The notes under the pieces were generated by a model. That model had not been told where the DNA came from and ran no database searches. It was given only the letters and a program-made list of their open reading frames with translations. A DNA stretch of 64,000 nt from Hemiscyllium ocellatum (lineage: Eukaryota): NCBI RefSeq assembly GCF_020745735.1, contig NW_026869307.1, positions 1 through 64,000 of the forward strand. The letters are read 5' to 3'. The translations under genes were made by a program, and so were the position numbers. Position 1 is the first letter of the stretch; every line of letters begins with the position of its first letter. Shown one piece after another: positions 1 through 40,605 of the stretch.

Positions 1-2350
1 TTAAAATGACCCATAATATTGTACCTGATCGACATATCACAACCTCAACTTCTTTTCATACCAAGATGCTGCGTGATAGCACACCAATGTAAATATTGGC
101 CAGACTATATATCTTGTTTATAAAGGAAAGTCGACAATATTTTTGGCCAAAAAAATTCTTCAACAAATTTGTTGACTAGCTCTCCCTAAAGTTGTCTAAA
201 CTTTGTAGGAGTTTGAACCTAGGCATGTGACTTGCTCCTGCAGTCTGTTGACTACTTGCTGTTCCCAATCGTTCCTTCGGCTGGAAATAACTTGATTTAC
301 AATGCTGGAACTTTCGGTGTATCTTTGCATTATGTTCTGTTCAACAATAGCACCTCTCAGAAGAAACCTATGCCTACATCTTGCTGGACACAGGGAAATG
401 GCACATATTACAGCGTTGCAATGAAAACTGCACAACCCTGAATGGCAGCCAGATGGGCCTCAGCCAGAGTTCATGTTGATAGTATTGGGCTTTGGGATTG
501 GTTCTAACTGGACATTTCTTTGAGTGGCAAGAACTAAATTATTCTTATGTTTCAGTAGGTTCTTTCTGTCCGTTTTCTCCAACTAAACTCACCACCCGTA
601 ATATAGGTTTGGTTAAAACACATTCCTTGGCGCTCATATTTAGTTTTTATTTTGCTTTTGAATAGAATATGGTATTATCTTTTATTTACAGTGGAATAAT
701 GGCTCAGCCTCAGTTGCATTTTAGCAATGCTTTCGCCATAAAGTGTAGAACTTAGTTGTATCTGTGTGCCTGTTATGTTTGACTGTTGCTGTGTATTGAA
801 AACGACAGGCATTAAACGCGAATGACGTAAAAATAACAGTTTTGGGACATGCTGCGCACTTGTGGATTCAATGGAATTCCTCCTGCTTACCTATCCAATG
901 TCTGAGAAGGTCGTATAGGAGATCATGTTTAGTGAATGGTTGTTTTTCGCTTAGCAGTAACAAGTTCCCTAACGGAGCTTAAATTATATTTTTGAAACAA
1001 ACTGCGTGCAAAGTAAATGTTAATATAGAAGCTCACTAACAAGTGCATGTTTCAAAATTAGAAAACTTGTCCTGAACTTAGTTTTCAACCTGCGACAAGT
1101 TGGAAATGGTTTTGTATACTTTGCTCTGGGCTTTGAAAGCTCCCGTTGTTAGACTGGCTTTGCAATGGACTGGTCAGCAATTCTTCGATGTAGCATTTCC
1201 TAGTAGATACAGATATTTCAAATAGTTGGTTCTTAATGATTGTCAATGATGATTGCAGCACGTTTTATGATATAAAACCAAATACTACATAGTGCACCCA
1301 GTAGTATCATCCATTTTCCCAATATATTTAAATTCTTGCTTTCTTTGCCACCTTTATGCCCCCATATAATGTAGAATTGTCTTGCAGTTTGGGTGTTGAT
1401 GCTTTCTTGGAACCAGGTATTTGCAGGGTGGCATACATCAGATTGTTATCTTCGCTTCCTTTCTTGGTCTGTGAAAGTAAAATTTAATATCACGCATTAT
1501 CCCACCATTGACTCTTTGATAAATGCAGTCATTTTTTTTAAAATAAAAAGACTTCAGGGGAATTTCCTTTCATCATTTGCCAACTTCAGGTTGTAACAGA
1601 GTTTATAATTATTTTTAACTGAGTTCTCTCCACTCTGTAGCTCTGCAGTAAAAGTTCCTGTTATTCTGATTTGAACTTCTCATAAAATAAGCTAGAATAT
1701 CAACATTGCCCATTAAAGAAAGCACGTTATTACTTCAATTAAAATAGCAAACGAATGAAATGCCGGTGTATTAAATGTGTTTGGAATGCTGATATTGCAA
1801 AACATCATTTTCGACACCCAATTTCTGAGCCATGACAGCCAATGTGATGTGCTTACCGATTGGATAGGCCTCAAGTTGCAATTTACTACCAGCTTTACCC
1901 CCCATTGTTGCTGATTTACCGAACCCTGGGACCCAGGCGAATATGGTGAGCCTTGGCCGAGATGGTCGGGCCCAGTACAGTATGGGTTAAACCTCTGACC
2001 TTTCGATTCCTACAGTTTAGCTTAGGGTCAAACGTCATTGAACGTCTTTTAAAAATGTTAAAGTTTCACTTGATCATATACGGTAATCTTCTTTGTTTGT
2101 CTGGGATTCTTATTTGTCTTGGTGCTGGATTCGACAGGGTAGGCATAAGGAAGTTTGTTCTGAGTTCCGTACTTTGTCTGTAAAATCGCTATTTGCCACT
2201 CTTACCAGTTCAGTTGCTATCATTATTACTGCTAGTTCATAAAAGGAAACAAGGATAATTTTCATTGTATTCTCACGCAAAACTCACAGTAAGACCTAGC
2301 TGTCCATTTGATATCTCCCCTGATTTCCATTTCCGACAAAATCGGCAAAA
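1..2350 (-). mobile_element. Highly degenerate L2-clade LINE RT fragment (duplication block 1)
   Basis: Colinear with 27722-28930 + 34896-35641 + 38560-38960, whose minus translation resembles L2 RT (CPMVWKI..., FATLVEVLTGSLKS). Confidence 0.55.
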
Positions 2351-5559: not shown

Positions 5560-5734
5560 CGACTCCATTATGACAATGTTGATGTTGTATGGGAGTGACG
5601 TGGATATTTTTTTCTTGACAATTCTTGGAATAGACAGTATTTTCTTCCGCGCGTCTGTGTTTGGAGAATCCTTTGTTGGCTTTCAATTTTACTGCAGCAG
5701 AGGCGGCATTTTCTTCAAATGGTGCTTTTCTAAG
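5477..5734 (-). CDS. Candidate terminal cytoplasmic exon of the receptor (phase 0)
   Basis: Strong acceptor ctcatatcttattttctag then an open frame LRKAPFEENAASAAVKLKANKGFSKHRRAEENTVYSKNCQ...; linkage to the TM exon not established. Confidence 0.35.
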   Translation of the reverse strand, partial: LRKAPFEENAASAAVKLKANKGFSKHRRAEENTVYSKNCQEKNIHVTPIQHQHCHNGVEKFGSEKTQHVTQQEQESRRFGKHLHS

Positions 5735-6860: not shown

Positions 6861-6904
6861 CGGTTAGCCATTTTGATTTTCTTCCACCGAATGTCTCCCT
6901 CTGC
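6861..6904 (-). other. Candidate small cytoplasmic exon
   Basis: Acceptor tactttgctttctattag and donor ACCG|GTAAGG; phase-1 joining gives GRGRHSVEENQNG*; other phases possible. Confidence 0.3.
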
Positions 6905-7506: not shown

Positions 7507-7611
7507 CAGCTGATACTTTCAATTTGAGTGTCAAGAAAATGCTTATGATTAGTACCATCGCCAATGCCCCTCCTGCACCTCCAATAATCATCAGACGATT
7601 GAAACCTTCAC
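7507..7611 (-). CDS. Exon 4: transmembrane segment, uncharged, with GxxxG
   Basis: Acceptor attctgtag, donor GCTG|GTAAGA; LMIIGGAGGALAMVLIISIFLTL followed by KLK stop-transfer; 105 nt. Confidence 0.85.
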
Positions 7612-10600
7612 CTACAGAATCAATACGTGATGGAAGTGAACATGTGTGGAACACAGGAGTGACATACGCAGAGCATAATGCACAGGATGATAAATTGCAA
7701 AGGTGTTTCCCAGGATAACCCAACTGTTAACCAAATTGGACCGTTTTAATTTTGTTGGGAAAACCTGTACAAGGTCCTTAATTTGCATCAGACCCAATGA
7801 GTTGCAGCTCAGCTATGTATTTTATGGAGAAAACACATATAATGACTTAACGGTGTGAGAAACTTCATCTGCATAGGAACACTGTTTGCTATGAGTAAAG
7901 GAAGTTGTACTTGCTCATTCATAGAATCCTAGAAGAATCTTAGAATCCCTATAGTGTGGAAACAGGTCATTTGGCCCAACAAGCCCACACCGATCCTCCG
8001 AAAAGTATTGCAGCCAGACCCTAATTGCTCTCCATTTCTCCTGAATGATGCACGAAATCTACACATCCCTTAACGCTATGGGCAATTTAGCTTGGCCAAT
8101 TCAACCAACTTGCACATCTTTGGAGTGGGGGAAGAAACCGAAGCACCCGGAGGAAACCTGCACAGACTCGGGAGAATGTGCAAACTCCATAGTCGCTGGA
8201 GGCTGGAAGTGAAGCCAGTTTTTTTTTGGTGAATCAAAAGTGCGAATCACTGAGCCACCATGCTGCCATTTCGGATCTTCCCCACACCACACACCCCACT
8301 CCCTATTAGATATATTTTCAATCTTACCTCGATTAAAGGTGTAGCTGACGCTGGTGGGCACCTTAAGACAAGCATGAGATACCAGACAGGTATAAACTAC
8401 ACCACTCTGCACAGGCTGAGCATCTTCCAATGAACTAGTAACCTCATAAAGCCCGTCCACGGTCTTGTTTTTCACAGTCTCTATTCCGGTAAGAATTTTC
8501 AAACCATTTCTTAACCAAGAGATTCCTAATTCCTCTGGGAAAAATGCAGTCGTTTTGCATTCGAATTTCAAATAGTTCTCTGAAATCCCTCCTACGGGAA
8601 CGATTTTCTGGAGTTTTGGAGGAACTATAACAGAAAATCAAACCTTTTAACATATTAACTTTCATTCTCTTTTTTTCACCTTTCACACTCGACCCGGTTC
8701 GACACCCCATGTAATGCTGTTCCAGTACTAACGTGACAACAGCTTTCCTTGTTATTTTGTTTGAAACTTGGTATTCGCACTTATTTTTAAAAATGCTTGG
8801 CAAAATGTTTGGATCATTTGCAAACGATGCACAACGAGCATAAACATGGGTAGAAAAACTTTAATGAAATTCAGCTATTATAATCTTCGAGGTTTAGCTT
8901 TATGTAAGTGAATTCGGTTTTTTGAACCTTTTTTGGAAGACATTCTACCTGGAGGTAAAACACGGACTAGGAGCTGAAGTAGGACAGTCAATGGGTATCT
9001 CTCCATCCTGGAGGCTCCCTGCCTCCATTCCTGATGAAGGGCTTTTGCCCTCTCTAATTTAAACTTTGGTTTCCACCATCTGCAGTCCTCACTTTTGCCC
9101 AGCCAATGGGTAGTCAATTCAGCTATTTGAGCCTGATCCAACAGTTTTTATGATCTTGCCTGAGTACTTTCTGTTCCTGATTGGCATTCCCGGTTTGGTC
9201 TGAAACCCTTTTTTGAAGTATCAATTCTACATTACTCAAGTGTACTTGTGTCCTCTTCATCTACAAGCGGTGCTTAGCTGCGAGCTGATCTCCTGTCATA
9301 ACGTACGCAGAGCATAATGCACAGGATGATAAATTGCAAAGGTGTTTCCCAGGATAACCCAACTGTTAACCAAATTGGACCGTTTTAATTTTGTTGGGAA
9401 AACCTGTACAAGGTCCTTAATTTGCATCAGACCCAATGAGTTGCAGCGAAAGAATAAGTTATGAACACGAGCGCAAGCGGTTTTCGGCATGTTTGCTGCT
9501 GCCCTTCCTTCATTTTGCCTGCTATGCCTACATCAGAGAGTGTCCATTTGGCAAGCTGCAGAAAAGGCCAAACAGAGGCAATGGGCAACTTCACTGCCTT
9601 ACACGCTTTAGGATTGTGGATAGAATCCAGCATTGAGGGCAACATCAACACTTGCTGTCTCACTGAATCATGTGATTCATTTGTTAAAACAAGCATTGGC
9701 ATTTCAAGCATGTTAAAGTGGGAAAATGCACACCCGAAACACTAAGCAATTCCACTCTTGAACTTACTCTGCCATTCACTTAGGTTATGGTTGAACTGTA
9801 ACTCAACTCCATTTGTCCGGTTTTATTCTATTTCCTTTATCCCCAGGATTAAGTTTATTTGATGTCGATCTCCAAGTTTGAAGGATTTGCGACAGAATAG
9901 TTTGATCGGCAATTTGTGGTCAAAACATTATCTTGTCTCTGTTGAATATTAATGGCTGTGGGTATGTTATCATTCACCTTAATTTGACATGAATGCATAT
10001 TGTCGATGCTGATTTGATGGTCTTTATGATCTTGTATCAAAGCAAGAGCTGTTGGAGCTGTTAAAATTATTCTTCTGAAAGATTACGACCTGAAATGTTA
10101 ATTGTGTTTTTGATCAACAAGGAAGTACAAAAGTATCAGAGCGGACAGGAAAATGCAATTGAGACCATAATCAGATCAGCCATTATGTTGATGAGTGGCT
10201 GAGTAAACACAAGGAATGAATGGTCTACACTTGCTTCTAATTCTTATGGTCGTATTACCTATGTAGATGTTCAGACATGTTTCAAGTCATTTCTGTTCAT
10301 ATTCCAACTTTTCAAAATCTGTAGTACATTGTTTTGTTTTCTTTTTGATTCTATTGTCACAGTTTAGTACCGTTATTTTGGTTAGAAGTAAACTGTGCGT
10401 TTTGCCTCATGATACAAAAGACAGAAATTGCTAGATAAACTGAGTAGGTCTGGCATCATAAGAACATAATAAATAGTTGCAGGGGTAGGCCATCTGACCC
10501 TCTGAGCCTGCTCTGCCATTCAATAAGCTTTTCGCTTTCTTGGACTCAGCTCCACTTCCCCGCCCTCTCACCTTTATTTCCTTTAGTTCAGAAATCAGAG

Positions 10601-11836
10601 TATCCTCGCTTTAAAAACATTCCTCGAGGTAGGTAGCTCCAGTGCTTCACTGGAAAGGGAATTCCTCAGATTCACAGCCCTTTGAGTGAAGAAGTTGGAC
10701 CTCAACTCAGTCCTAAATCTGCTTCCCCTAATTTTGAGGCTATGTGTGAAGTGAAAGGAGAGTTAACGTTTTCAGGTCCAGCGACCTTTCTTCAGAAGCG
10801 TTCTGAAGAAGGATAGTTGGATGCTAAACGTTAGCGCACACAGATGCTGCCAGACCTGCTGAGTTTTTCCAGCAATTTCTAGTTTTGTTTCAGATTTCCA
10901 GAATGCACATTTTTTTTGTTTTATCTTATTGCATGAATTTATTTCATCGTAAAATTTGAACAGTTATCCCATTTCACTATCTTGACGCAAAATCAACTGC
11001 TTCTGCCCCAAAAAGGCGCTCATTGAATTAATAACACTGTGCAATGTCATGATCACAATGAGCAGTGGAATTGACATTGAGAAATGGCGCAAGACGTACG
11101 AAAGCTAATTAACAGCCATTGTATAGCGAGGTCATTGGGGAAGAGATCTCCTATAATGTGAAGCAAAAACGCTGTAACCGAGTTTTCTCTAATTATTAAA
11201 GCTCAGATCACATGAATTGCATAAAACAGCTGAATAGTTGTTTGTCCTGGGTGCAGTGCCACTTACCGCACACTGTCAGCAATGAGCCGCTTTCCGCTCC
11301 ATGGGTGGCTTGCTGATGCTTTATTTTACAATGATACATTCCAGAGTCTGCAAAAGTGACGTTGAGAATGTGAAGCGAGCCTCTTCCTTTCTGGACATGG
11401 AAACGCTTACTGTTGTCTGGTTCCAGAAACGATTCCTCGTTGTGTCTCCACCAAAATATTTCAGGAACATGTTCAAATATTGGAAATGTGCAGAACATGG
11501 AAACATTGTCACCTCTCGCCGCCTCTAAGAGTTTGGGAAACTGATGTACTTTGCTCGAAGTTACTTTAGTGACTACTGAAATAAAAGTAAAACCATGATA
11601 CTAGCTGTAGACAGCTGACCTGAAATAACATCGGGAGGAGTAAAATATTGAGAACAATTGAGAACAATCGCACGCATCAAATTGGAGAAGCAAAACATCA
11701 AACTTTGCAATTCACGGAAGCTGTAAATATGAAATAAAATCTAGGTTACTCTAAAAGGGCAATTCTAACATATAGGAGTACCTGGCCAAGCCATACGCAG
11801 AAGAGCCATGAACAGAACCGCTGCTCTCACCAACAT
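7507..11836 (-). CDS. Non-rearranging IgSF type I receptor, leader-V(J-like)-C1-TM; join(11782..11836,11267..11575,8328..8624,7507..7611); 3' cytoplasmic exons unresolved (SIRP/NCR3LG1/VJ-C1-like architecture)
   Basis: Four exons splice in frame, all phase 1 with GT-AG introns, giving 255 codons: MLVRAAVLFMALLRMAWP|VVTKVTSSKVHQFPKLLEAARGDNVSMFCTF...DSGMYHC...ESGSLLTVC|VPPKLQ...CKTTAFFPEELGISWLRNG...YTCLVSH...FNR|GEGFNRLMIIGGAGGALAMVLIISIFLTLKLKVSA. Confidence 0.9.
7665..7808 (+). repeat. 144-bp direct repeat, copy 1 (intron between C1 and TM exons)
   Basis: Identical to 9304-9447 by direct comparison; the ORF track shows the same peptide at 7612..7797 and 9296..9490. Confidence 0.95.
7921..8268 (-). 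mobile_element. HE1-type SINE, diverged
   Basis: Reverse complement of the SINE core (gcacccggaggaaacc..., gggagaatgtgcaaactcca). Confidence 0.75.
8328..8624 (-). CDS. Exon 3: C1-set Ig domain
   Basis: Acceptor ttttctgttatag, donor CGAG|GTAAGA; C1 motifs CxxxxFFPxxLxISWLRNG, DGLYEVTSSL, YTCLVSH; 297 nt. Confidence 0.92.
9304..9447 (+). repeat. 144-bp direct repeat, copy 2 (intron between V and C1 exons)
   Basis: Identical to 7665-7808. Confidence 0.95.
10755..10910. mobile_element. Foldback Penelope-type mini-element, family 2 (CTGAAGA core)
   Basis: Inverted arms around cttcagaagcgttctgaag; minus strand CTGAAGA-a-AGGTC gctg GACCT-GAAAACGTT. Confidence 0.65.
11267..11575 (-). CDS. Exon 2: V-type Ig domain with J-like G strand
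   Basis: Acceptor ttacttttatttcag, donor TGCG|GTAAGT; B-strand Cys (VSMFC), Trp (IFWWR), SLHI, DSGMYHC, GSLLTV; 309 nt. Confidence 0.92.
11782..11836 (-). CDS. Exon 1: signal peptide
   Basis: ATG at 11836, MLVRAAVLFMALLRMAWP, donor CCAG|GTACTC, 55 nt, phase 1. Confidence 0.8.
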
Positions 11837-12699
11837 TTTGCAAATGGAATATAAGAGTGGCCTCCTTGATGTAAACACGGGCCGTATTTTGAGTGGCTGG
11901 TGTGGAGAGACAAATGGGTTTCATAGGTAAAATGTTAAACATGACATGAAATATCACATGACTAATGTGGCTTATTCAATATGGTTGTACTTCTCTGTGG
12001 GAGTTTGTTAGGTCGGAGGTCCGCTCCTAACTCCCTTCTGAAACGTTTCCATATGAAGTGATCATAGTATCACTGCGTTCCAAAATCCTCCTTCGTCAGC
12101 ACTCACATTTTATCGTTAGTTTAATTCTGAAAATATCGCTTCAGCTCGCAGTACTGCAACTCGTCATCTAAGCGATCCATTTCATGTAGCAACTGTTTAT
12201 CCTGGGAGCTCTGAGTTTTATGCAATTTTCATCTTTAACAACCTTCGAAAACTTGAGTTTTCAGGAGGAAGCACTGGATTGGTAATTTTATTCATCTCTA
12301 TTTCTCCACTCCAGAGCTGATGTGGACAGTTTGAGGTTTGCTTTGGCTGAAGATGAGGGATGTCAAGTCTGGGGAGCACATTTTTAAGGTGAGGGACAGC
12401 GATTTTTAAAAAAGACATGTGGGACAAACGTTTTTACACGTGCGTAATGATGTTCCTGACGACGTGATGGATCTGGATACAAATACAACATTTAAAAGCA
12501 ACATTTTACTTTGACAAGTAAACGAATAGGAAAAGTTTGGAGGGATACAGGCCAGGAGTGGGCAAGTGGGACTACATTAGATTAGGATTACATTCAGCAT
12601 GGACTGGTTGCACCGAAAAATCTGTTTCTGGGCTGTGTGACTCTCTGACTATGACTTTATCGAAGAGAATAGCATCACATCCTCCATCCTACTGAAGTT

Positions 12700-13560
12700 C
12701 CTCAGCCCGCATTTCATTCCATATAAGTATCTTCCAACATCTTTACGGCCTTGACATCCCTCAGGATTGAACATAAGACTCCAGGTTGAGGCTAATTCAT
12801 GTTCAAATTAGGGGTCTTATGCTTTATGTCCACTTGTCCACCCGCCTTCAAAATATTATAAACACACCCAGAACTTTACTATCAATTACATTGTCCTTCT
12901 CTAGACAATCACTAAAACGTGAATAATTCCTTCTGCTTGCTTTTTAAAAATATTCCATTATGAGCAAGGCAGATTTGTCCATCCCTAGTTACCCATGAGG
13001 GAAGACTCATTGCTCATTTTTATGCGTAGTAGGAAAGCTGTCAGGTCTTGCTGTTTTCTCATCAACTTGCTTAGAGACGTGGTGATATAGTATTGGACCC
13101 TTTGTTTTTTATACTGGGATCTGTCGGCTCAGAAGTGGGGACAATAATACTGCACCACAAGAACCCCTGAGCTGACAGTGCTGTTAGGAAACGCATGGGA
13201 CAGAGTTTTGAAAGCTATAAGATTAAATGGTCCAGTGCAAACACTAACCATTGCTATGAAATCTTTAAGATTGGTATTGACAACTGGAATTGTTGAAGAA
13301 TGATTTTTCAGGTCAATTGTTTTCCCTCATGAAATCCCAGCAATTGCTGAGTTTTCACATGTTGTGTGGATGTACAATAAAGGACTTCTGAAGGAATTAA
13401 AGATAGATACCACTCGAGCAGTGATGAATCTCCATAGACAGGTGAAAATGACTGTCGCGATTGTTTGTTGTGCTTCCCACAATTGCAACAGAAATTCCGA
13501 GGTGAAAAACAAAGCCGCACGGCAATTTTCATCAGGTAATTGTTACTAAGGAAGAAAGGG
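12700..13560 (-). mobile_element. Very old LINE-like fragment; paralogous to 44060-44950
   Basis: Colinear similarity, e.g. caatcactaaaacgtgaataattccttctgcttgcttt vs caatcactaaaatgtgaatcattccttctgcttgcttt. Confidence 0.5.
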
Positions 13561-27400: not shown

Positions 27401-28930
27401 CAAATCTTGAGTAGCAAAGTTATAAAGGATCTGCTAATATTGGGAATGATGGAAAATGGAATTTGCTTTGCATATGCAGTGAAAAACCTGGATTGGTTCG
27501 ATCTTGTGTAATGCAGCGACACATTAAAGGTCACTGATTGTAACTTTGACACACCACAAGAAGTGATAGATGGCGCCTTCCACACTCTTATTCCTCTTAT
27601 TGCTGTTGCCCACCCCTCACCCTTGCAAATCACCCACCCTGCTAGCCAAACAAGTTTACCAGCTTTGAAGCAGCAAATTGATGGGTGAAGAAATTTCAAA
27701 ATCAGTTGTCCCATCACTATCAAAATGTCCTATAATATTGTGCCTGAACGACTTGTTACAGTCCAACACATTATTGGTGCAGATATACTGCTAGATAAAA
27801 GTCAATATAGACATTGGTCAGACTTATATCTTGTTTATAACGGAAATCCAACGGTCCTCTGGTCAAACAAATTCTTGAACACAATGAAAGATTTTTAGCT
27901 AGCTCTTTTCAAATGCCTCTCAGTTTTGTGAGGGATTGAACGTGGGCACGTACGATTTTCCTGAAGTCTTTTGAACATTTTCTGTTCCCAAAATGTCTAT
28001 TAGGCTCCAAATAAATTGATTTACAATGCTGGAACCATGCACGTGTCTTTATATTATGCTCTGATTGGCACATGTTACAACATCACAATGAAAGCTGCTC
28101 AACTCTGGGTGACAGTCAGACTGGCATCAGCCAGTGCTCCTGTTGATAGAATTGGGTCTCTGGGATTGGACTCTCACTGGGCCAATCTTTGAGCATCAAG
28201 AACGAAATTGTTCCTGTCTTTCAGTAGGTTCATTCTATCCTGTTCTGCCCAACTCATTCAGCCTACTGCAGTATAGTTTGATTAAATAAAAGGCCTTGCA
28301 GCCCAAATGCTATTTTCTACTTTGTTTTTGAATACAATGATACTATATCTTGTTTACATTGGTGTAGTAGCTCCATCTCTGGAACATTCAAGTAATGTTT
28401 TCGCCTTCAACGTAGAGGCTAATTACATCTCTGTGCTTGTTAGGTTTGGCTGTTCTTTTATTGAAAACGGCAGGCATTAAACTCAAATAACTAAAGCAAA
28501 ATTGGTTTCGGGACAAGTTGTGGAGTTTTGGATGCCGTGGCCTTCCTTCTGCCTACCGATCCCATGACATAGAAAACTATATATGTTTATATGTAGAAGA
28601 CCATGTTTATTGAATGGTGACTTTCATTTCAAATCGTATCAGGTCTCCAAATGGTATTTAAAGATATTTATGAAACTCAGCAAACTAACTCCAAAGTCAA
28701 TGTCAATTTCGAAATGCACAAACAAGTGTATGTTTACGAACCAGAACACTTGGGTTGAACTTAGTTTTCAACTTGTGACAAGTTGAAAATGGTTTTGGAA
28801 ACTTTGCCCTCGGTGAGGACAGCTCCTGACATTACGTGGGTTTTTTTTAATGTATTGGCCAGCAATTCTTCCATGTAGCATTTCCCAATAGACACAGATA
28901 TTCCAGATATTTAGTTCTTAGCCTAACTGT

Positions 28931-29559
28931 TGTTATGGACTCAGCCAGAAAACTCAAAACATCCTTAAATAGGCAGCCCAGACCATAAATTTGCAACTTG
29001 TTTCGGTAAGTGTACAGTGAAAATTACTCACAGTAAGTAAGCTAGGTTGACGACTAAATTTTAAAACAGACACAACTTTATTCACAAAATTACACAATGG
29101 AACACAAAGAACTGAATAAAGAACCCCTACAGAACTCAGCCTATCTAACTAGACTTAATTATGCTTTTCTGAATATTTACAACAGTCTCAATAAGTAAAC
29201 TCTCTTTAAAACCAGTATAATTCTAACACATGCTTACAAATTGAAGTTGTAGGACAGAAAAGAGAGAGAGAGAGTTTCCACACAGCTTCCTGTTGAACTT
29301 CCAACTAGTTCAAGGCTGAACTAAAACTGCTCAGCTCAGTTAGCTAAAGAGCTGACACACCTCTTTCTTTACACAGGTCACTTCTCATTTGTTTACATAG
29401 AAGTAAAAGGCCTCTCAAAATCCTTTTCATCTCTGTACCAAACCAGACTGATTGGAGCCCGGCCTGGTTTATTGATACTTTGAAAAGAAAATCAAGGACA
29501 CAGTCTCCTTTAGCCAGGGAGCAGCTTTTAGGGAAAAAAAAGGGACTAGCTTTGTGACA
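28931..29559 (-). repeat. 3' LTR (TG...CA); PPT (cctcccccgtttaaaaa on plus) directly adjacent at 29560
   Basis: tgttatgg...tgtgaca; roughly 80% similar by eye to 34262-34895. Confidence 0.88.
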
Positions 29560-30274
29560 CCTCCCCCGTTTAAAAAAAAGAACCATCAATCCCAAAGTTT
29601 GGCTTCATTTTTAACCCTTCAAAACTCAGTTCATACACTAAACACACATCTACACAATATTAACGATAAACATGCAAACATGCACAACCACATGCAAATT
29701 CAGGCTGCGGCGCACCAACCACTGAATGCCTCCATATCTCATTCGAATCTGGTAACGCATCAGCAATAATATTTTTGCAACTTCCCGCATGCACAATTAT
29801 CAAATTGAATGGCTGCAACACCAAGCTCCATCTGAACAGTCTGGCAATTTTGTCCTTAAATCTTTCCACAAATGCCAATGGGTTGTGATCCGTGTGTACG
29901 ATTATCACAGATGCATTGCTGGTAATATAAACACTGAAAATGCCAACACCAAGCTTAAAGTCTCTTTCTCCACTATTGAATATTTCTGCTGATGAACATT
30001 CAACTTTCTGGAAAAATACCCGATGGGTCTTTCTATCCCTTCATCATCCTCCTGCAGGAGCAACACACCAGCACCCACATCTCTGGCATTGAAAGGTTTC
30101 ATGTAATCTGGTGTAGCTAATACTGGGGCAGTGGTTAACACAGTTTTTAGGCTGTCAAGTGCCTTTTGACAGTCCACTGTCCAATTCAACTTCTTGCCTT
30201 TTTTTAAACAATTCAGTGAGTGGAACAGCTACACTGCTAAAGTTTAATGCAAATCCCCTCAACTCCAGGAATTG

Positions 30275-30469
30275 GAGCTGCAAATGTGTTGCTGGTCAAA
30301 GCACAGCAGGCCAGGCAGCATCTCAGGAATAGAGAATTCGACGTTTCGAGCATAAGCTTATGCTCGAAACGTCGAATTCTCTATTCCTGAGATGCTGCCT
30401 GGCCTGCTGTGCTTTGACCAGCAACACATTTGCAGCTGTGATCTCCAGCATCTGCAGACCTCATTTTTT
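30275..30469. mobile_element. Foldback Penelope-type mini-element containing a perfect 162-bp palindrome; 13-bp TSD actccaggaattg
   Basis: Arms 30276-30356 and 30357-30437 are exact reverse complements; TSD at 30262-30274 and 30470-30482. Confidence 0.9.
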
Positions 30470-33400
30470 ACTCCAGGAATTGTAATACTGCTTTTTTGTC
30501 GACGGTGTGGGAAATCCCTTAATTACTTTCATTTTTGCATCTCGTAGTACCGTTTGTCCATGTTCAATAACATGGCCCAGAAAAGTGACTTGGGCGTTCG
30601 CAAATTCACTTTTAGCTAGGTTCACCACCAATGCCTTCCGAGGTCATTTGAATAAGTCTGATACATGCTGCACATGTTCCTTCCATAAGTAACTAACATG
30701 ACTGTCGGCGAGGTCCAGTCACTGCAAATCACTTCGATTATGCCATCTTGGAACATGCAATCTATCTCCTTCTGAACGTGTGCCAACTTTAGAGGATTAT
30801 GCCCATAAGGATGTTGCTTAATCGGTACAACATCTTCTATATCTACATCATGCACAATTAGGTTAGTACTTCCCGGTTTATTTCTGTATATATCTCTCTA
30901 CGTGATAGTAATAACTTTTTCAGGTCATTTTGATTTTCTTGTGGAAGGTAACTTAATGATTTATCCAATTTTTGAAAACTTCCTCATTGTTCAATATGGT
31001 TTGAGGAATGTCCAATTCAGAATCCTCTGAACTTGGTTCGTCCTTCTGTGATGTGACCATTAACACCTTCTCCTCTTGCTATCCTTCCCTTCAAAACACC
31101 TTTGGGGGATACTCACATGACACTCTGTGAGATTTCTTCCTGTCTGGAGTTCTTATCAAGTCGTTCACCATACTCAATTTCTTCTCAATTTGATATGGTC
31201 CACTTAAGCTTACTTTTGAAGACTCAGCTAAAACTGGGAGTAACACCAATACCATAAGCCCAATTGCAAAATAGTGAATTTGTGATTTACTTTTCGATTC
31301 CTTTTTTTTTGTATGCTGTGATACTTTCAAATGCTGTCTAGCCAACTCTCCAGCTCGACTTAATGTTTCTCTAAAATTTGACACATAGTCCAAATGGGTA
31401 GTCTCTGAATTCTGACTTATTAATTTCTCCTTAGTCAATATTAATAGTCCTCTTACTTCATGCCCCAAAATTAATTCAAATGGACTGAATTTGGTTAAGG
31501 AATTCAGTGCACCTCTGATCACAAAAAGTACAAATGGAACTCCCTTATCCTAATCATCGGATAATCCTGACCATAAACCCTCAACATGGTCTTTAGTGTT
31601 TGATGCCATTTCTCTAGTGCACCTGTGATTTGGATGATATGCAATAGATTTGAATTGCTTTATTCCCAAGTTGTCCATAACATGTTGAATCGTTTGGATG
31701 TGACGTTTGATCCTTGATCTGACTGGATCTCTATTGGTAGTCTGTATCTAGTAGTAAAAAAAATCTTCTGGAAACCTTTTAGCTGTGATGTTGCATAATG
31801 GGATTGCCTCTGGAAATTTAGTCGATACATCCAATATTGTTATTAAGTGCTTATTCCTACATTTTGTTCGAGATAGGGGCCTTCGCAATTAATTATGACT
31901 CTTGTGAAAGGTTCCTCAAATGCTGGAATATTTATTAAAGGTGCAGGTTTTATTACTGCCTGTAGTTTTCCAATTAGCTGACATGTATGACATGTCTGTC
32001 AAAATTCAACTACATCCGGGCTAGTAAAAATGTCTTTGTATTTTAGCCTGTGTTTTCCTCACCCCTCAATGACATCCAAGTGGAAGTTCATGCGCCACTG
32101 GCAGCACCTCCTTTGTATATCCTACTGGCAAAACAATTTTATAAATCCCTGCCCATCTCTTATCTGCTTGGATGTGTATTGGTCTCCATTCCCTCAATAA
32201 GAACATCATTTGTTAAGTAATAACACACTGGGATGCATTCACTTTCTTTCTCAAAAAATGTCTTTCAATATAACTGTTTTACCTCCTCATCTTTCTGCTG
32301 CAATTCAGTAAGCTGAGCAGATGCTTGCATATCTACTTATTTGCTCCTCCTCTGTTCCACTTATTTGATCAGAAAAAAAGATTTGGATAATGCTATGTCA
32401 GTATCCTTGTCTATGCCTTTTGCTTCAACTTGTGCCTCTGCAATCTTGTGATCAAACAATTCGGGCAAAAAAAAATTGGATAAACCTTCTCCATATCTTC
32501 AGTTGCCTGCATGTCTACTGGCTTTTAACCGAGAGTAGGCAGCATGCCTAGCGGTGAATTAACCATATCATTTGCAAGGAGAAATTGTATTCCTGGAGCT
32601 GAGAGTTTGTCCAGTACAACTACCACAAATTCCCCACTCTTCTCTGGACTCTCTAGCTTCACTTTACATAATTGAGCACTTTTTGTCTCACCATGAATTT
32701 CTGTTATGAGTACCTTTTCTGGCAATAGTTCCTCAGGAATGCATATTTCTGCATCCTTTAGCATTACAGACTGAAAGGATCCAATGCCCATTAATACTAC
32801 TCCTGGCCTATGTGAATAAACTTTATGCTTGCTGGTGTATTTTTAAGCAGATCTGGCATTCCTCTGCAATCAAGCTCTGATCATCTTGGACACTCTGAAG
32901 TTGTATAACTTCCCGTGTGCTTTTTGTTACCAGTGCAACAATACTTTCAGCTTGTCTGGTTTTCCTACATCTGGTTTTCTCTTAGCCCACCAACACTTTA
33001 TTACAATGAAAACACTGGAGCCTTTTAGCTTCTTTGTCCTCCTCAAGAGTTTCTTTTTAACCCTGTAGTAAGTTATCCCTATGATCTTTACTGAGATCTA
33101 CCTTTCCCTTTCCATGTGAAGATTTCTCTTTGCCTCAATTTCTATCCCTCATGGACTGAAATTGATTCTGGTTGTCAAACTGAGTTTTGTGGACCAGCTC
33201 GGAATCATGAGCCACTTCAGCTGCCAACCTTGCTGTTTTAAACCTCTGCTCTTCCACATGAGTTCACACTACTTCAGGCAGTAAAATTTTGAATTCTAAA
33301 CTAACTAACTCTCTAAGGGCATCATAGGTTTGCTCGATTTTTAAAGCTTTTACCTATCTTTCGAAATTACTCTGTTTGATCCTTTCAAACTCAATATGGA

Positions 33401-34261
33401 TTTGACTAGGGTCACTCCTTAGATTCCTGAAACGTTGTCTATACGCTTCTGGTACAGACTCATATGCACTTATAATTTTTCCACCTCCTTGTACTCCCCA
33501 GATACCTCCTGTGATAGAGATGCGAATACCTCACTAGCCCTACCTACAAGTTTCGTTTGGATCAACAAAACTCACATTGCCACTGGCCATTGCATTTGTT
33601 AAGCCACCTTTTCAAATGAGATAAGAAAAAGAGCCTTTTCATCAACTTTAGGAAATGCTTGAACATACTTAAACAGTTTCTCACCAGGCTTCTGACTACC
33701 AGGGACTTGCTCATCCTCACTCTCTTCCTCACGAAGTCTACCCTCAGCCTTTATCTCCAGCCTTTTAAGTTGTGTTTCCTTTTGAAGTGTCAATTTTTCA
33801 AGTTGAAAAGCTTTATTTTTCTTCCTCTGCTCTCTCTTTTTCCCTCTCTTTTGCTTCTAATCACAAGTCAACCTGTTTCATTTTAGAAGCCCTTTCCTGA
33901 GCTCTTGCCTCTAACTCAAGCTGCTTCATTTGCATTTGAATTCCTGCCATCTCTATAGATTCTGATGGTTTCTGTAGGAAGTTTAAATGCTGAGATACTG
34001 CTGTAATTACCTCTCCTTTCCTCACAGAAGCAGGCAGTTTCGTTTTCAGCATCTCTGCTAATTCCTGCTGCTGGTCTCATTTACTTTTGCAAAACATCTA
34101 CAGTCACCACATCCATTTCCAGAAAACTTTTGGGGACTGAAAGAGCCATTACTTTGACTGAAAGAGACTTTAGCTTTGTCTACCCAACCAAACCAACACC
34201 CAAAATGTAGATAATAGCACCTCCCACTCACTGTTTAAAGTCCTGCAAAGAGCCCACCATC

Positions 34262-34895
34262 TATTAAAAACTAGGTCAGGCCATTCAAGACATTCTTAAG
34301 CAGGCAGCCCCAGACCATAAATTTGCAATTTGTTCTGGTAAGCCTACTTTCAAAATTGCCTGGAGTAAGTTAGCTTGGTTGACTACTAGATTTTAAAACA
34401 GAGAAAAAGTAATTCACAAAATTACACAATGAAACACAAAGAACAGAGAAAAGGACTCATACAGAACTCAACCTATACAACTAGACTAAATTATGCTCTT
34501 CCAAATATACACAATTATCCCTTAAAAACCAGTATAAATGGAACACATGCTTACAGGTTGAGATCGTAGGGCAGAAAAGGGAGCGAAAGTTTCCACACAG
34601 CTCCCTGTAGAACTTCCAACTAGTTCAAGACTGAACTAAAACTTCTCAGGTCAGCTAGAGTGCTGACCAACCCCCCTTTCTTTATACAGGTCATTTCTAC
34701 AACGTGACCACTTTGGCCTGAAGTCTCATCTGTTTACATGTAAGCAAAAGGCCTCTCAAAATCCTTTTAATATCTGCACCGAACCAAACTGATCAGAGCC
34801 CAGCCCAGTTTATTGCCCCTCTGAAAAATATCAAAGTCAGAGTCTCCTTGAGCCAAAGAACGACTTTTGTGGAAACATTAACTAGCTTCGTGACA
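34262..34895 (-). repeat. 5' LTR, followed on the minus strand by a decayed PBS tggtgggctc
   Basis: Homologous to 28931-29559; ends ...cgtgaca on plus. Confidence 0.85.
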
Positions 34896-35868
34896 TTGTA
34901 ATGCATGTTAATAGCAATTGGAGCATGTTTTCTAATGCATAACGAAATACAATGCACCAGCATCCATTACTATCTTCCATCTTCCCAATATATCTAGAGT
35001 CTCAGCTGCTCCGATTTCTTCATCACGTTTATTTCTGCACATTGTTCTGTTGTTTGGGTTTTGATGCTTTCTTGGAATCAGTTATTTGCAGAGCAACATT
35101 AACCAGCTTTTTATCTTCTCTTCCTTCATTGTTCTGTGAAAGTAAAATTAAATATCGCCCGGTAGTCCATCGGTGACTCATCCACAGAGACAGTCGAGGT
35201 TTTAGTAAAAAGGCTTCAGTGGAATTTCGACTCATCAGTTACCAACTTGAGGTTGTAAGTGGGTTTAGTATTACTTTCTATCTGCCTTATCTCTTCATGA
35301 TATAGCCCTGCCATAAATAATCTTGTTATTCTGGTTTCAATGTCTTGCAAAATGAGTTAGGATTTAAGGGAACCGGTTAGTACTTCAACTAAAGTTGCAA
35401 AGACATTAAACGCTGGTGTGCTAAAAGTATTTGCAATGCTCACATTGCAATACATTCCTTTCAAGTTCCATTTGCTGAGCTGTGACGGCCAATAAAATCT
35501 ATTCATCCAATGGAGAGGACTCAAGTCACACTTTGCAAATCCCTTTACTACACCGCTTCTGATTTTCCAGACCATGGGACACATGGTGAATATGGCGTAC
35601 TTTGGCTAAAATGTTCGGACCCAGTACAGCGAAGATGTTAAACATAGAACATAGAACATAGAAAGATATAGCGCAGTACAGGCCATTTGGCCCTCGATGT
35701 TGCGCCGACCAAAGCCCACCGAACCTACATTAGCCCACTATCCTCCATTTGCCTGTCCAATGCACGTTTAAATGCCCATAAAGAGTGAGAGTCGACCACT
35801 GCTACTGGCAGGGCATTCCATGAACTCACGACTCGCTGAGTAAAGAATCTACCCCTAACATCTGTCCT

Positions 35869-36915
35869 CTACCTACCTCCCCTTAATTTAAAGCTATGCC
35901 CCCTCGTAATAGCTGACTCCATATGTGGAAAAAGGTTCTCATTGTCAACCCTATCTAAACCCCTAATCATCTTGTACACCTCTATCAAGTCACCCCTAAA
36001 CCTTCTTTCCTCCAATGAAAACAGCCCCAAGTGCCTCAGCCTTTCCTCATACGATCTTCCTACCATACCAGACAACATCCTGGTAAACCTGCTCTGCACC
36101 CGATTCAGTACCTCCACATCCTTCCTATGGTATGGCGACCAAAACTGCACACAATACTCCAGATGCGGCCTCACCAGAGTCTTATACAACTGCAACATGA
36201 CCTCAGGACTCCGGAACTCAATTCCTCTACCAATAAAAGCCAGTATGCCATATTCCTTCTTCACAGCACTATTTGTCAGGGTGGCAACTTTCAGAGGTCT
36301 GTGTACATGGACACCAAGATCCCTCTGCTCATCCAGACTACCAAGTATCCGACCATTAGCCCAGTACTCCATCTTCTTGTTACTCTTACCAAAGTGAATC
36401 ACTTCACACTTCCCTACATTGAACTCCATTTGCCACCTTTCTGCCCAGCTCTGCAGCTTATCTATATCCCGCTGTAACCTGCCACATCCTTCCTCACTGT
36501 CAACAACTCCACTGACTTTCGTAACATCCGCAAACCTGCTCACCCAACCTTCTAGCCCCTCCTCCAGGTCATTTATAAAAATGACAAACAGCAATGGTCC
36601 CAAGACAGATCCTTGCGGAACACTGCTAGTAACTGCATTCCAAGATGAACCTTTACCATTAACTACTACCCTCTGTCTTCTTCCAGCCAGCCAATTCCTA
36701 ATCCAAACCTCTAAAGCATCCTCAATGCCATACCTCCATATTTTCTGCAGTAGCCTATCATGGGGAACCTTATCAAACACCTCACTACAATCCATATACA
36801 CCACATCTACCGCTTTACCCTCGTGCACCTCCTTAGTCACCTTCTTAAAGAATTCAATAGGGTTTGTGAGGCACGACCTGCCCTTCACAAAACCATGCTG
36901 ACTATCCTTGATCAC
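35869..36915 (-). pseudogene. CR1 ORF2 reverse transcriptase fragment
   Basis: QHGFVKGRSCLTN, SSVPQGSVLGPLLFVIFINDL; the expected FADD reads FADV; neighbouring frames are broken. Confidence 0.9.
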
Positions 36916-37982
36916 ATTATTCCTATCCAGATGTTCATAAATCCTATCCTTACAATTCTCTCTAAGACTTTGCCCACAACAGAAGTGAGACTCACTGACC
37001 TATAGTTACTAGGGTTATCCTTACTCCCCTTCTTGAACAAGGGAACCACATTTGCTATTCTCCATTCTTCTGGCACTATTCCTATAGACAACGAGGACAT
37101 AAAAAATCAAGGCCAATGGCTCTGCAATTTCCTCCCTTGCTTCCCAGACAATCCTAGGATAAATGCCATCAGGCCCAGGGGACTAATCTATATTCACCCT
37201 TTCCAGAATTTTCGACACCTCTTCCCTACATACCTCAAAGCCATCCATTCTAATTAATTGTGACTCAATATTCACATCGACAACAATGTCCTGTTCCTGA
37301 GTGAATACCGACAAGAAGAATTCAGTCAGTGTCTCTCCAATCTCTTCAGCCTCCACGCACAACTTTCCACTACTATCCTTGACTGGACCTATTCCTACCC
37401 TAGTCATTCTTTTATTCCTGACATACGTATAGAAAGCCTTTGTATTTTCCCTAATCCTACCAACCAAGGACTTTTCATGTCCCCTCCTTGCTGCTCTTAG
37501 CTCTCTCCTTAGATCCTTCCTGGCTACCTTATAACTCTCAATCGCCCCAATTGAACCTTCACGCCTCATCTTTACATAGGGCACTCTCTTCCCTTTAACA
37601 AGGGATTCCAATTCCTTATTAAATCATGGTTCCCTCACACGACCCTTTCATCCCTGCCTGACAGGTACACACTTATCAATGACACGCAATAGCTGCTCCT
37701 TGAATAAGCTCCATATATCGATTGTGCCCTTCCCTTGAAGCCTATTTTTCCAAGCCACACATCCTAAGTCATGCCTCACCGCATCATAATTTCCCTGCCC
37801 CCACCTATAACTCTTACCCTGCAGTGCACACTTATCCCTCTCCATCACTAGAGTAAAAGTCACTGCATTGTGGTCACTGTCCCCAGAGTACTCACCTACC
37901 TCCAATTCTAACATCTGGCTGGTTCGTTGCCCAGAACCAAATCCGTATGGCCTCACCTCTTGTTGGCCTGTCTACATATTGT

Positions 37983-38191
37983 AGAGTAAAAAGTGAGGTC
38001 TGCAGATGCTGGAGATCAGAGCTGAAAATGTGCTGCTAGTTAAAGCACAGCAGGTTAGGCAGCATCCAAGGAACAGGAAATTCGACCTTTCGGGCCAGAG
38101 CCCTTCATCAGGCTCTGGCCCGAAACGTCGAATTCCCTGTTCCTTGGATGCTGCCTAACCTGCTGTGCTTTAACCAGCAATACATTTTCAG
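37983..38191. mobile_element. Foldback Penelope-type mini-element, family 1; 15-bp TSD ctgtctacatattgt
   Basis: TSD at 37968-37982 and 38192-38206; inverted arms; hammerhead-like core on minus 38080-38111. Confidence 0.9.
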
Positions 38192-39239
38192 CTGTCTACA
38201 TATTGTGTCAGGAAACCCTCCTGCACATATTGGACAAACACCGACCCATCTAACGTACTCGAGCTATAGCTTTCCCAGTCAATATCGGGAAAGTTAAAGC
38301 CCCCATAACAACCACCCTATTACTCTCACTCTTCTCCTGAATCATCCTAGTAATCCTTTCTTCCACGTCTCTAGGACAATTAGGAGACCTCTCCTGCGCG
38401 CCTTTACTGGGAAAACCTACCCAGGGAAGCTTGCGCTACACCAGCTTCCGGTCCGCTCCGCGCTTTAAAAAAAACCTTTTAAATTTAAACCGAAAAACTT
38501 AACCGCGACTACAAAGAGATACCGCCAAACAGCCCTCACCTGCTCCGCCGAGAGAGTGACCTGGACCGTCAGATCTCTACAGTTTAGTGTAGGACCAAAT
38601 GTCATTGAAGTTATTACAGTAAGTGATAAAGTTGTATGTGATCATAGACAGTACCCTCTTTTGCCTGCCCGGATTTCTTATTTTTGCTGGTGCTGGATTC
38701 GACAGGGCAGGCATAAAACAGATTGATCTCAGATTGGCTATAAAATCGATACTTACCACTTTCACCAGGTGAATTTCTTTTGTTATTGTTCAGGACCATG
38801 ATTATTGCTGCTAATTCAGAAAAGGAAACATTGATAATTTTGATTGTATTCCAGCCTGAAACTGATGTTAAAAGTCTATGCTTGTTTGATATTTGCCTTG
38901 ATTTCTATTTCCGACGAAATCGGCAGGAGAGATGTCAATTCCCAAACGCTGCCTTTATTTTGACTATTTTTGCCATGGCAAAAGGATGCTTGTGACAATT
39001 TCATGTTTTGCTGCCCAATGCTAATTAGGTTAAACTGATTGTCTTTCCAGGCCATTTCAAAGACTCGTTAAATATCAACCCTATGACTGAGAGTTATGTC
39101 GGCTAGGGAAGTAAGAAACGTCAATTTCTGCAGCTCCCGATGCTGCGTGGCTTGCTATGTTCTTCCAGCCTGCTGCCTATCTATTAAGTACATAAAAAAC
39201 AACCGCAGATTTCCTTCCCGAAATGACATTACCAACATG

Positions 39240-40605
39240 CAAGCAAGGAATAAGAGTAAGCCACTCGGCCTTTCAAGCCTGCGCCATCATTCGATGAGGT
39301 CATTGACTGATCTGGCCGGTGAATCAACTCTACATTCCTGCATAAACCCGATCATCTTTCATCCGCTTGGTAGTTGAGAATTGACTACCCCTGCCTTAAA
39401 AATATTCAATGCTTGTGCATCTACTGCCTTTTTAAGAAGCGAAATCCAAAGACTCATAATCCTATGACAGAAACAAAAATACTCACCTCTGTTTTAAATA
39501 GGCGATCCCTTATTTTCAAACTATGACCTCTAGTTTTAGATTATAGCACAAAGAGAAAGAATCTTTCAACATCCATCTGGTCAAATCTGTTAGGATCTTA
39601 CATGTTTCAACTGAGTCACCCCGACTCTTGTAAACACTAAAGGATACCTATGCTATAAACTATCAAGATGAAGAGAGAAACGAAAAATTAGGTGAAGCAA
39701 AAGAATAATGGGGAACCAGAAAATCGTGGAGGAGTTGAATGAATATTTTGCATCAGTCTTCACGGTAGAAGACACTAATTGCATTCCGAATTACAAAATA
39801 TTCAAGGGGAAAAGGAGGAGATGAAAGAAGTATAATAAATATCACTGGAGAAAAAATGTCGGGGAAACAAATGGGACTGAAGCCAAATAGGTGGAAAGAT
39901 AAAGGAGAAGCAGTGCATGTAATATATTTGGAATTTCAGAAAGCATTTTCTAAGGTACCACACACTAGATTACTTTATCAGATAAAAACCCATGGTGTTG
40001 GGATAGTACCTGAACATGGATAGAGGATTGTCTAAGTAATAGAAGTTTGAGAGTTGGGATGGAGGGAGGGCATTTTCAGAACAGAAACCTGGAACTCATG
40101 GAATTCCGCAGTGATTACTATTAGGGCCACAACCTTTCCAAATATATATATACATAATTAAAGACTTGTATGCAGAAAATAAATGCACAATGGCCAGATT
40201 TGTGGATTACATTTCTGGGATGCTGAGTGATGTGGATGACACAAAAAGTTTGCAGAGGGACATAGCCAGGTTGTGTGAATGCACCAAAATTTGGCAGATG
40301 GAGAATAATATCGGAGAATGTGATGTGATGGATTTTGGCAGGAATAATAGACGAGCTGACTATTATTTAAGCACAGAAAGACTGCAGAAAGCTGCGGAGT
40401 GGAGGGACTTGGGAGTCTTCATGCATGAATCATAAAAGGTTAGCACAGAATTTAAGCAGATAATAGAGATGGCATATGGCCTCTTGGCCTTTATTTCAAA
40501 GAGAGTGGAATATAAAAGTCCGGCTGTTTGGCCAATACTATACCGGCACTAATTGGACCATAGTTGAAATACTGTGACCACGATTCTTACCCCTATTTCA
40601 AATAA
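39240..40605. mobile_element. Back-to-back CR1 fragments, paralogous to 2400-4000
   Basis: Same orientation switch and junction (gaagagagaaa...aaaatt) as at about 2830. Confidence 0.8.

Follow-up and report, generated by a model that had tools for sequence, protein, structure and literature searches.

What kind of gene is it that, in a shark, carries an immunoglobulin (Ig) V domain already joined to a J-like strand, follows it with a C1 domain and anchors the product in the membrane? The question is raised by a locus of Hemiscyllium ocellatum (assembly GCF_020745735.1, contig NW_026869307.1, positions 1 to 64,000 of the forward strand); this whole stretch of 64,000 nucleotides is referred to here as the window. 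Non-rearranging VJ–C1 genes are material for reconstructing the origin of antibodies and T-cell receptors (TCRs), and a sequence-only reading of the window had pointed to an intact gene of this type, possibly a relic of the antigen receptors that preceded RAG. The analysis described here indicates that the locus is probably a non-rearranging receptor gene of the immunoglobulin superfamily (IgSF), derived from an inhibitory member of a chondrichthyan family and now a tail-truncated, non-signalling form.

Exon Structure and Ectodomain

The gene lies on the minus strand and comprises seven exons, spanning positions 11836 down to 1328, as located by a script and by tblastn with homologues. The first four exons encode the leader, the ectodomain and the membrane span:

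11782..11836, minus strand: exon 1, leader, 55 nt, with the ATG at 11836, most of the signal peptide (MLVRAAVLFMALLRMAWP) and a phase-1 GT donor; the leaders of the family members P0006–P0008 match it.
11267..11575, minus strand: exon 2, V-set domain with J-like G strand, 309 nt, ending in HGAESGSLLTV with an extra cysteine next; phase 1 at both ends.
8328..8624, minus strand: exon 3, C1-set domain, 297 nt, with the YTCLVSH hallmark and an extra cysteine in the FG loop.
7507..7611, minus strand: exon 4, stalk, transmembrane segment and the residues KLKVSA, 105 nt, with a phase-1 GT donor at its end.

Among these exons, each internal exon is preceded by an AG acceptor and each exon is followed by a GT donor. 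Every junction is in phase 1 and the spliced product amounts to 255 amino acids, which bears out the four-exon structure originally proposed. In Pfam searches, the V exon matched V-set with E=4e-12 and the C1 exon matched C1-set with E=5e-9, both exceeding the curated cutoffs. The C1 domain carries the YxCxVxH hallmark as YTCLVSH and the transmembrane segment, LMIIGGAGGALAMVLIISIFL, is uncharged, so that the canonical C1 domain and the uncharged membrane span of the first description also hold.

The J-like G strand ESGSLLTV lies inside the V exon, as had been noticed. The exon reads via ..YHCKIKHQQATHGAESGSLLTVC straight into its donor, with ESGSLLTVC being followed by GTAAGT, and the J-like strand is therefore germline-joined. 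A search for recombination signal sequences (RSS) over 12 kb recovered three heptamers, against about three expected by chance; none of them adjoins the V exon and the best nonamers matched 6/9, in agreement with the earlier statement that no RSS flanks this exon. No second C1 domain was found between the V and transmembrane exons, and no further C1 match in the 64-kb window. Taken together, the proposal of a non-rearranging, germline-joined V(J)–C1–transmembrane gene of a cartilaginous fish is supported.

Loss of the Cytoplasmic Tail

The extent first assigned to the gene (7507–11836) proved too short, since the transmembrane exon ends at a good phase-1 donor (CTG/GTAAGA) and the gene goes on for three more exons, down to 1328:

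6861..6904, minus strand: exon 5, first cytoplasmic exon, 44 nt, reading GRGRHSVEENQNG and then TAA at 6864–6866.
5627..5734, minus strand: remnant of exon 6, reading LRKAPFEENAAS...NTVYS, its GT donor lost by a 12-nt deletion.
1328..1468, minus strand: former last coding exon, with an immunoreceptor tyrosine-based inhibitory motif (ITIM), LMYATL, and a motif resembling an immunoreceptor tyrosine-based switch motif (ITSM), TLYGGI, then a stop; now untranslatable.

In relatives, the cytoplasmic tail encoded by exons 5, 6 and the last exon contains an ITIM, to which some of them add an ITSM-like motif. The tail lesions were called by comparison with two of these relatives: P0005, a gene model of Chiloscyllium plagiosum, and L001, a paralogue in C. 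punctatum. The codon at 6864–6866, TAA in the window, encodes Q in P0005 and E in L001. At the end of exon 6, L001 reads TCCCAG followed across the junction by GTAAGATGGAAGAATTGTC, and the window reads TCC and then AAGAATTGTC, a 12-nt deletion with which the donor has gone. The last exon of the window still reads ..NNLMYATLQIPGSKKASTPKLQDNSTLYGGIKV.. before its stop, and it is cut off from translation by the combination of the TAA in exon 5 and the loss of the exon-6 donor. The description of the gene as intact thus stands for the ectodomain and the transmembrane segment, but not for the tail.

The predicted product, a glycoprotein of 268 amino acids, ends in a stub of 21 residues past the predicted membrane span, with no signalling motif. 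It contains three N-X-S/T sites and six cysteines, four of which make up the pairs of the V and C1 domains. The remaining two, Cys121 at the V–C1 junction (LLTVC) and Cys207 in the C1 FG loop (SHACL or SHDCL), are common to the window gene, P0005 and L001, and other family members are without them. As a speculation, this pair might make an extra disulfide or a dimer link.

A Large V–C1 Family in Cartilaginous Fishes

The window gene has many relatives. About 90 homologues were found by protein searches, and all of the approximately 70 that could be named are chondrichthyan (about 50 from search tables and about 20 from cluster look-ups). The C1 domain of the window matched shark proteins at E=2e-37 to 4e-31 with 65–73% identity, and matches at E=2e-37 place the homology of the domain far beyond chance. 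Further members were found with a full-length catshark member and with a 24-sequence profile. When 1.84 billion representatives were searched exhaustively with a profile, the best 150 matches included about 70 additional two-domain proteins, the remainder being giant multi-Ig proteins. Three word-indexed searches and this exhaustive profile search returned only chondrichthyan V–C1 proteins and giant multi-Ig proteins.

Members are present in the shark genera Scyliorhinus, Chiloscyllium, Hemiscyllium, Heterodontus, Heptranchias, Mustelus, Carcharodon, Rhincodon and Pristiophorus, in the batoid genera Mobula, Hypanus, Hemitrygon, Narcine and Pristis, and in the chimaera Callorhinchus. The named members of a species lie on one large record, as in Heterodontus, where every named member is on a record of 99.65 Mb. 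The white-shark member P0115 is on a record of 193.5 Mb, and PMC10751288 places the MHC of that species on chromosome 19; judging from the size of the record, P0115 is probably not MHC-linked. The family genes are not listed in the supplements of the MHC paper.

The automatic names given to these proteins conflict with one another: SIRP-alpha-like, SIRP-beta-like, NCR3LG1-like, tapasin-related-like, Ig lambda-like and TCR-beta-like. No paper describing the family was found in the literature covered, which excludes Flajnik 2012 (B7H6), Ohta 2019, Flajnik 2023 (UrIg) and Ohta and Flajnik 2015. The suggestion that the gene belongs to an uncharacterised family is consistent with both observations, and the family appears to be large, unnamed and, on the sequences found so far, seen in cartilaginous fishes only.

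Within the family, the spliced window protein is 94% identical to P0005 (98% over the V exon) and 45–61% identical to shark and ray members over V–C1. In a maximum-likelihood tree, the window gene is placed beside P0005, in a clade (support 99%) that comprises 24 genes of sharks and rays. This clade holds all three tail types described below. The chimaera genes fall in other clades, which indicates that the family is older than the split between elasmobranchs and holocephalans. The idea of a single conserved relic was therefore not upheld: the window gene is one copy in a large, clustered and fast-duplicating family, with ITIM-bearing members, members with an arginine in the membrane span (Arg-TM) and short-tailed members.

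The tails of 84 members with near-full V–C1 coverage were sorted by a simple automatic script. In this rough census, 30 were scored as ITIM-bearing, at least two of which (P0003 and P0010) are really Arg-TM forms; 15 had a charged transmembrane segment, 20 had a short or other tail and 19 had no transmembrane segment in the model. Examples of the ITIMs are LTYAAL and LTYATL, and the charged membrane spans typically read R...D/E-H. In Scyliorhinus canicula, P0003 (with an Arg..Asp membrane span) and P0004 (with an uncharged one and a short tail) have ectodomains that are 92% identical. Near-identical ectodomains on different membrane spans and tails are a signature of paired receptors. P0004, P0013, P0015, P0018 and P0177 are short-tailed members elsewhere in the family. 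By the same scheme the window gene has a short tail, made by truncation, its ITIM exon at 1328–1468 being still recognisable.

Proposed Role of the Family and of the Window Copy

The proteins of the family are type I membrane proteins in which a single V domain, with the J-like strand built in, is followed by one C1 domain and a transmembrane segment. To judge from their motifs and from the analogous receptors SIRP, KIR and LILR, ligand binding may fall to the V domain, with the C1 domain as a stalk. In the ITIM-bearing members, the ITIM and ITSM-like motifs would recruit SHP-type phosphatases and inhibit the cell. The Arg-TM sister genes, with nearly the same ectodomain, would couple to an ITAM-bearing adaptor (immunoreceptor tyrosine-based activation motif). 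Such a set of ITIM, Arg-TM and short-tail forms would follow the paired-receptor logic of SIRP-alpha, -beta and -gamma.

The window copy derives from an inhibitory member, in which a nonsense codon in exon 5 and the loss of the next donor took off the ITIM/ITSM exon. If it is expressed, its product may bind the family ligand without signalling, as an adhesion or decoy form. That the copy is such a SIRP-gamma-like non-signalling or decoy receptor is held to be slightly favoured.

Close Relatives and Local History

Over its whole length, in all exons and introns, the window gene is collinear with its C. punctatum paralogue L001 (BEZZ01000124.1; region 9480–13250), at 66–77% nucleotide identity. 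This collinearity, which includes the introns, identifies L001 as a paralogue that arose by duplication of the whole gene. Its exons 5, 6 and the last one are intact, with the ITIM LTYATL and a second motif, ALYAEV. The leader donor of L001, with a shifted GT, and its transmembrane-exon acceptor, in which TAG has become TAT, differ from those of the window, and L001 must either splice at alternative sites a few bases off or be impaired.

The C. plagiosum model P0005 reads the V-exon polypyrimidine tract as coding, contains two C1 domains and skips the transmembrane exon. With this odd exon content, it appears to have been put together wrongly from two or more genes. Its first exon corresponds to a short open reading frame (ORF) upstream of the window gene.

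When the window was searched by tblastn with the V, C1 and transmembrane exons, no second intact copy was found, only debris. The features around and within the gene are as follows:

12109–12180, minus strand: short ORF MDRLDDELQYCELKRYFQN, the first exon of the P0005 model at its position in the window.
13311–13463, minus strand: weak V-like fragment, 35–38% identical to the C''-to-G strands of the family, with an insertion and a following stop (E ~0.03–0.4).
27722..40345, minus strand: decayed partial second copy, its 3' part only (middle of intron 6, last exon and 3' flank), 69–75% identical.
7662..7808, no strand: 147-nt stretch directly upstream of the transmembrane exon, with a second copy at 9301–9447 in the same C1–transmembrane intron, 99.3% identical.
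35869–36915 (minus), 52161–53457 (plus), 41687–42897 (minus) and 21352–21768 (minus): reverse-transcriptase ORFs and fragments of long interspersed nuclear elements (LINEs).

The decayed second copy is split by retroelement insertions of about 6 kb and about 3 kb, and no V, C1 or transmembrane exons accompany it. The remnant of its ITIM exon (35041–35145) reads KLVNVAL, the tyrosine having been lost. The V-like fragment sits 1.5 kb upstream of the leader exon and is possibly a dead V exon, or else a chance match. The two copies of the 147-nt stretch, 1.6 kb apart, represent a very recent intragenic duplication. Outside the gene the window consists mostly of LINE and retroelement ORFs, and no flanking genes are present in its 64 kb.

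Truncated Receptor or Pseudogene

The alternative that survives best is that the window copy is a young unprocessed pseudogene. Its function would have ended with the loss of the ITIM tail, and its open ectodomain exons would merely be without lesions as yet. This account is possible rather than likely, and the observations that weigh against a working truncated receptor are gathered here. The part of the gene that encodes the tail carries two independent lesions, which could mark the onset of decay of the whole gene. However, decay of the downstream exons is expected once the stop has arisen, with or without function of the rest, and the four ectodomain and transmembrane exons retain their ORFs and all eight splice sites. 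The TAA at 6864–6866 could itself be an assembly error or a polymorphism. Moreover, a transcript to which the downstream exons are still spliced could, on account of the early stop, be subject to nonsense-mediated decay. If instead the loss of the exon-6 donor joins exon 5 directly to the last exon, only a few bases would separate the stop from the last junction, and such an mRNA would be expected to escape this decay.

The J-like strand also bears on the choice. The family consensus for this strand is G-x-G-S-x-L-T-V, and the first glycine of the G-x-G motif, invariant in 11/11 relatives, is replaced by Glu in the window gene, as a decaying copy might show. The same change is nevertheless present in the C. 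plagiosum counterpart, for which the model shows an intact tail, and so it is not private to the window gene. The ratios of nonsynonymous to synonymous substitution (dN/dS) against L001, which are 0.21 in the V domain and 0.25 in the C1 domain (dS ~0.53), point to long-term purifying selection on the ectodomain; they are averages since the duplication and are silent on recent constraint. In addition, the gene is absent from the protein database as a product of its own source genome. The decayed family debris upstream on the same strand (the 3' remnant at 27.7–40.3 kb and the weak V-like fragment at 13311–13463) would likewise fit a pseudogene, whereas the presence of short-tailed members as annotated genes in other species speaks for a truncated form that is kept.

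Whether tail-less receptor, as preferred here, or pseudogene, the window copy is a once inhibitory member altered by a nonsense codon and the loss of a splice donor. Tail loss is the type of event by which receptor families diversify through birth and death, and the window copy by itself is an ordinary member of its family.

Relation to Known Families

The family was compared with known receptors by sequence profile and by structure. When a two-domain profile of the family was searched against the PDB, contiguous V–C1 matches were obtained with lambda light chains, UrIg2 (9dmx), SIRP-alpha (2wng) and SIRP-gamma (4i2x). The V profile aligned end to end, J strand included, with the V domains of TCR-beta, TCR-alpha and light chains (42–49 bits), and the C1 domain of the window matched C1 domains of Ig CH, UrIg2 and B7-H6. 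The domain-wise PDB lists are swamped by multi-domain chains with additive scores and are of no use for ranking families. UrIg2 (9dmx) topped the PDB search made with the window C1 domain, with a score that sums three C domains; membership of UrIg/UrIg2 was rejected on architecture, the window gene having one C1 exon.

The family ectodomain was modelled with AlphaFold (pLDDT 85.4), and the model was searched with Foldseek against Swiss-Prot. The matches, at E 1e-13 to 1e-12, have 18–25% identity across families and are thus non-discriminating: TCR-beta, B7-H6, Ig light chains, SIRP-alpha, TAPBPL, CADMs, CD276, PD-L1 and butyrophilins matched almost equally well. Against the PDB, light chains gave the best E-values. 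The domain arrangement of the model superposes poorly on Ig and TCR chains (template-modelling score, TM-score, ~0.4) and with a TM-score of ~0.7–0.8 on SIRP and B7-type ectodomains. In a comparison of language-model features, the nearest named clusters were SIRP-alpha. One outcome that the sequence-only reading had named as overturning it was a clear 1:1 orthology to a gene already characterised, such as SIRP or B7-H6. No such orthologue emerged from the structure and sequence searches, in which SIRP, B7-H6, TAPBPL, Ig and TCR chains were about equally distant (18–25% identity).

A further alternative is that the family is the cartilaginous-fish B7-H6 (NCR3LG1), which would make its members NKp30 ligands and not receptors, and the family already known. 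Shark B7-H6 genes were reportedly described as early as 2012, in the work of Flajnik on B7H6. Among the single-C1-domain chains of the PDB, the window C1 domain is matched best by human B7-H6 (40.8 bits), B7-H6 entries rank 2 and 6 in the Foldseek search of Swiss-Prot (TM-scores 0.76 and 0.72), and many members are automatically named NCR3LG1-like. However, its identity of 21–22% is no better than that of SIRP-alpha (23–24%), TAPBPL (23%) or CD276 (21–25%), and B7-H6 is outside the top 60 PDB matches of the two-domain profile, inside which SIRP-alpha, SIRP-gamma, UrIg2 and lambda chains are found. The pairing of ITIM and Arg-TM forms is a receptor trait and not a trait of B7 ligands, and the proximity to SIRP-alpha in language-model features also speaks against this identification, which is considered improbable.

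Finally, germline-joined Ig clusters exist in sharks and the V-profile alignments, the contiguous match to lambda chains and some of the automatic names would suit a rearranging or once-rearranging IgL or TCR gene with a germline-joined VJ, but this reading is refuted in practice by the exon structure (no RSS, with V and J in one exon spliced directly to the C1 exon), the transmembrane exon and ITIM-type tail, the 18–22% identity to Ig/TCR and the grouping of family members with each other and not with Ig or TCR.

The deeper ancestry of the family is a separate matter. The presence of a large VJ–C1 family across the sampled cartilaginous fishes, with inhibitory, probably activating and silent tails, bears on the origins of both antigen receptors and SIRPs. 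There is a slim chance that it is the surviving membrane-bound form of the two-domain VJ–C1 gene postulated to have preceded UrIg and the rearranging receptors or, equally, the cartilaginous-fish root of the SIRP lineage. If so, these shark genes would show that the pre-RAG role of the receptor was paired inhibitory and activating innate recognition.

Comparison with Known Systems

Ig lambda and TCR chains resemble the window gene in having a V domain with a G-x-G-(S/T)-x-L-x-V J motif and one C1 domain. They differ in that the window gene has a transmembrane segment and neither RSS nor a separate J, and in that the family has a signalling tail; identities are 18–22%. A two-domain VJ–C1 ancestor of UrIg and the antigen receptors has been postulated by Flajnik et al. 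(PMC12227049, Fig. 2), and the ectodomain of the chondrichthyan family has the same layout, a resemblance that is not evidence of descent.

UrIg and UrIg2, like the window gene, are elasmobranch, non-rearranging and built from a single-exon VJ followed by C1 domains. UrIg consists of VJ and three C1 domains and is secreted, and UrIg2 consists of VJ and nine or more C1 domains (PMC12227049). Both are single-copy genes linked to the MHC or to an antigen-receptor complex, whereas the chondrichthyan family has many copies, one C1 domain, a transmembrane segment and an ITIM-type tail. The PRARPs (A and B) of birds and other bony vertebrates, reportedly described by Fu et al. in 2019, are said to be a linked gene pair, in contrast to the large and expanded family described here.

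B7-H6 (NCR3LG1) shares the V–C1–transmembrane layout and the phase-1 exons and is similar in fold (Foldseek TM-scores 0.72–0.76). Nevertheless, it is a ligand without the pairing of ITIM and Arg-TM forms, it is only 21–22% identical, and SIRP and lambda chains stand above it in the family-profile search.

According to PMC9652883, the SIRPs are known so far from mammals, birds and lizards, and their origin is described there as unknown. They share with the family a V domain that does not rearrange and that carries a J-like strand, with a C1-set domain next to it, a clustered multigene organisation, and a mixture of ITIM-bearing, charged-transmembrane and motifless short tails. Many family members bear the automatic name SIRP-alpha-like. 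They differ in having a V and two C1 domains where the window gene has one C1 domain, which places it outside the three-domain definition of a SIRP, and the identity to the family is 23–24%. No known family is clearly the closest, and by analogy SIRP would be the best functional counterpart of these cartilaginous-fish receptors.

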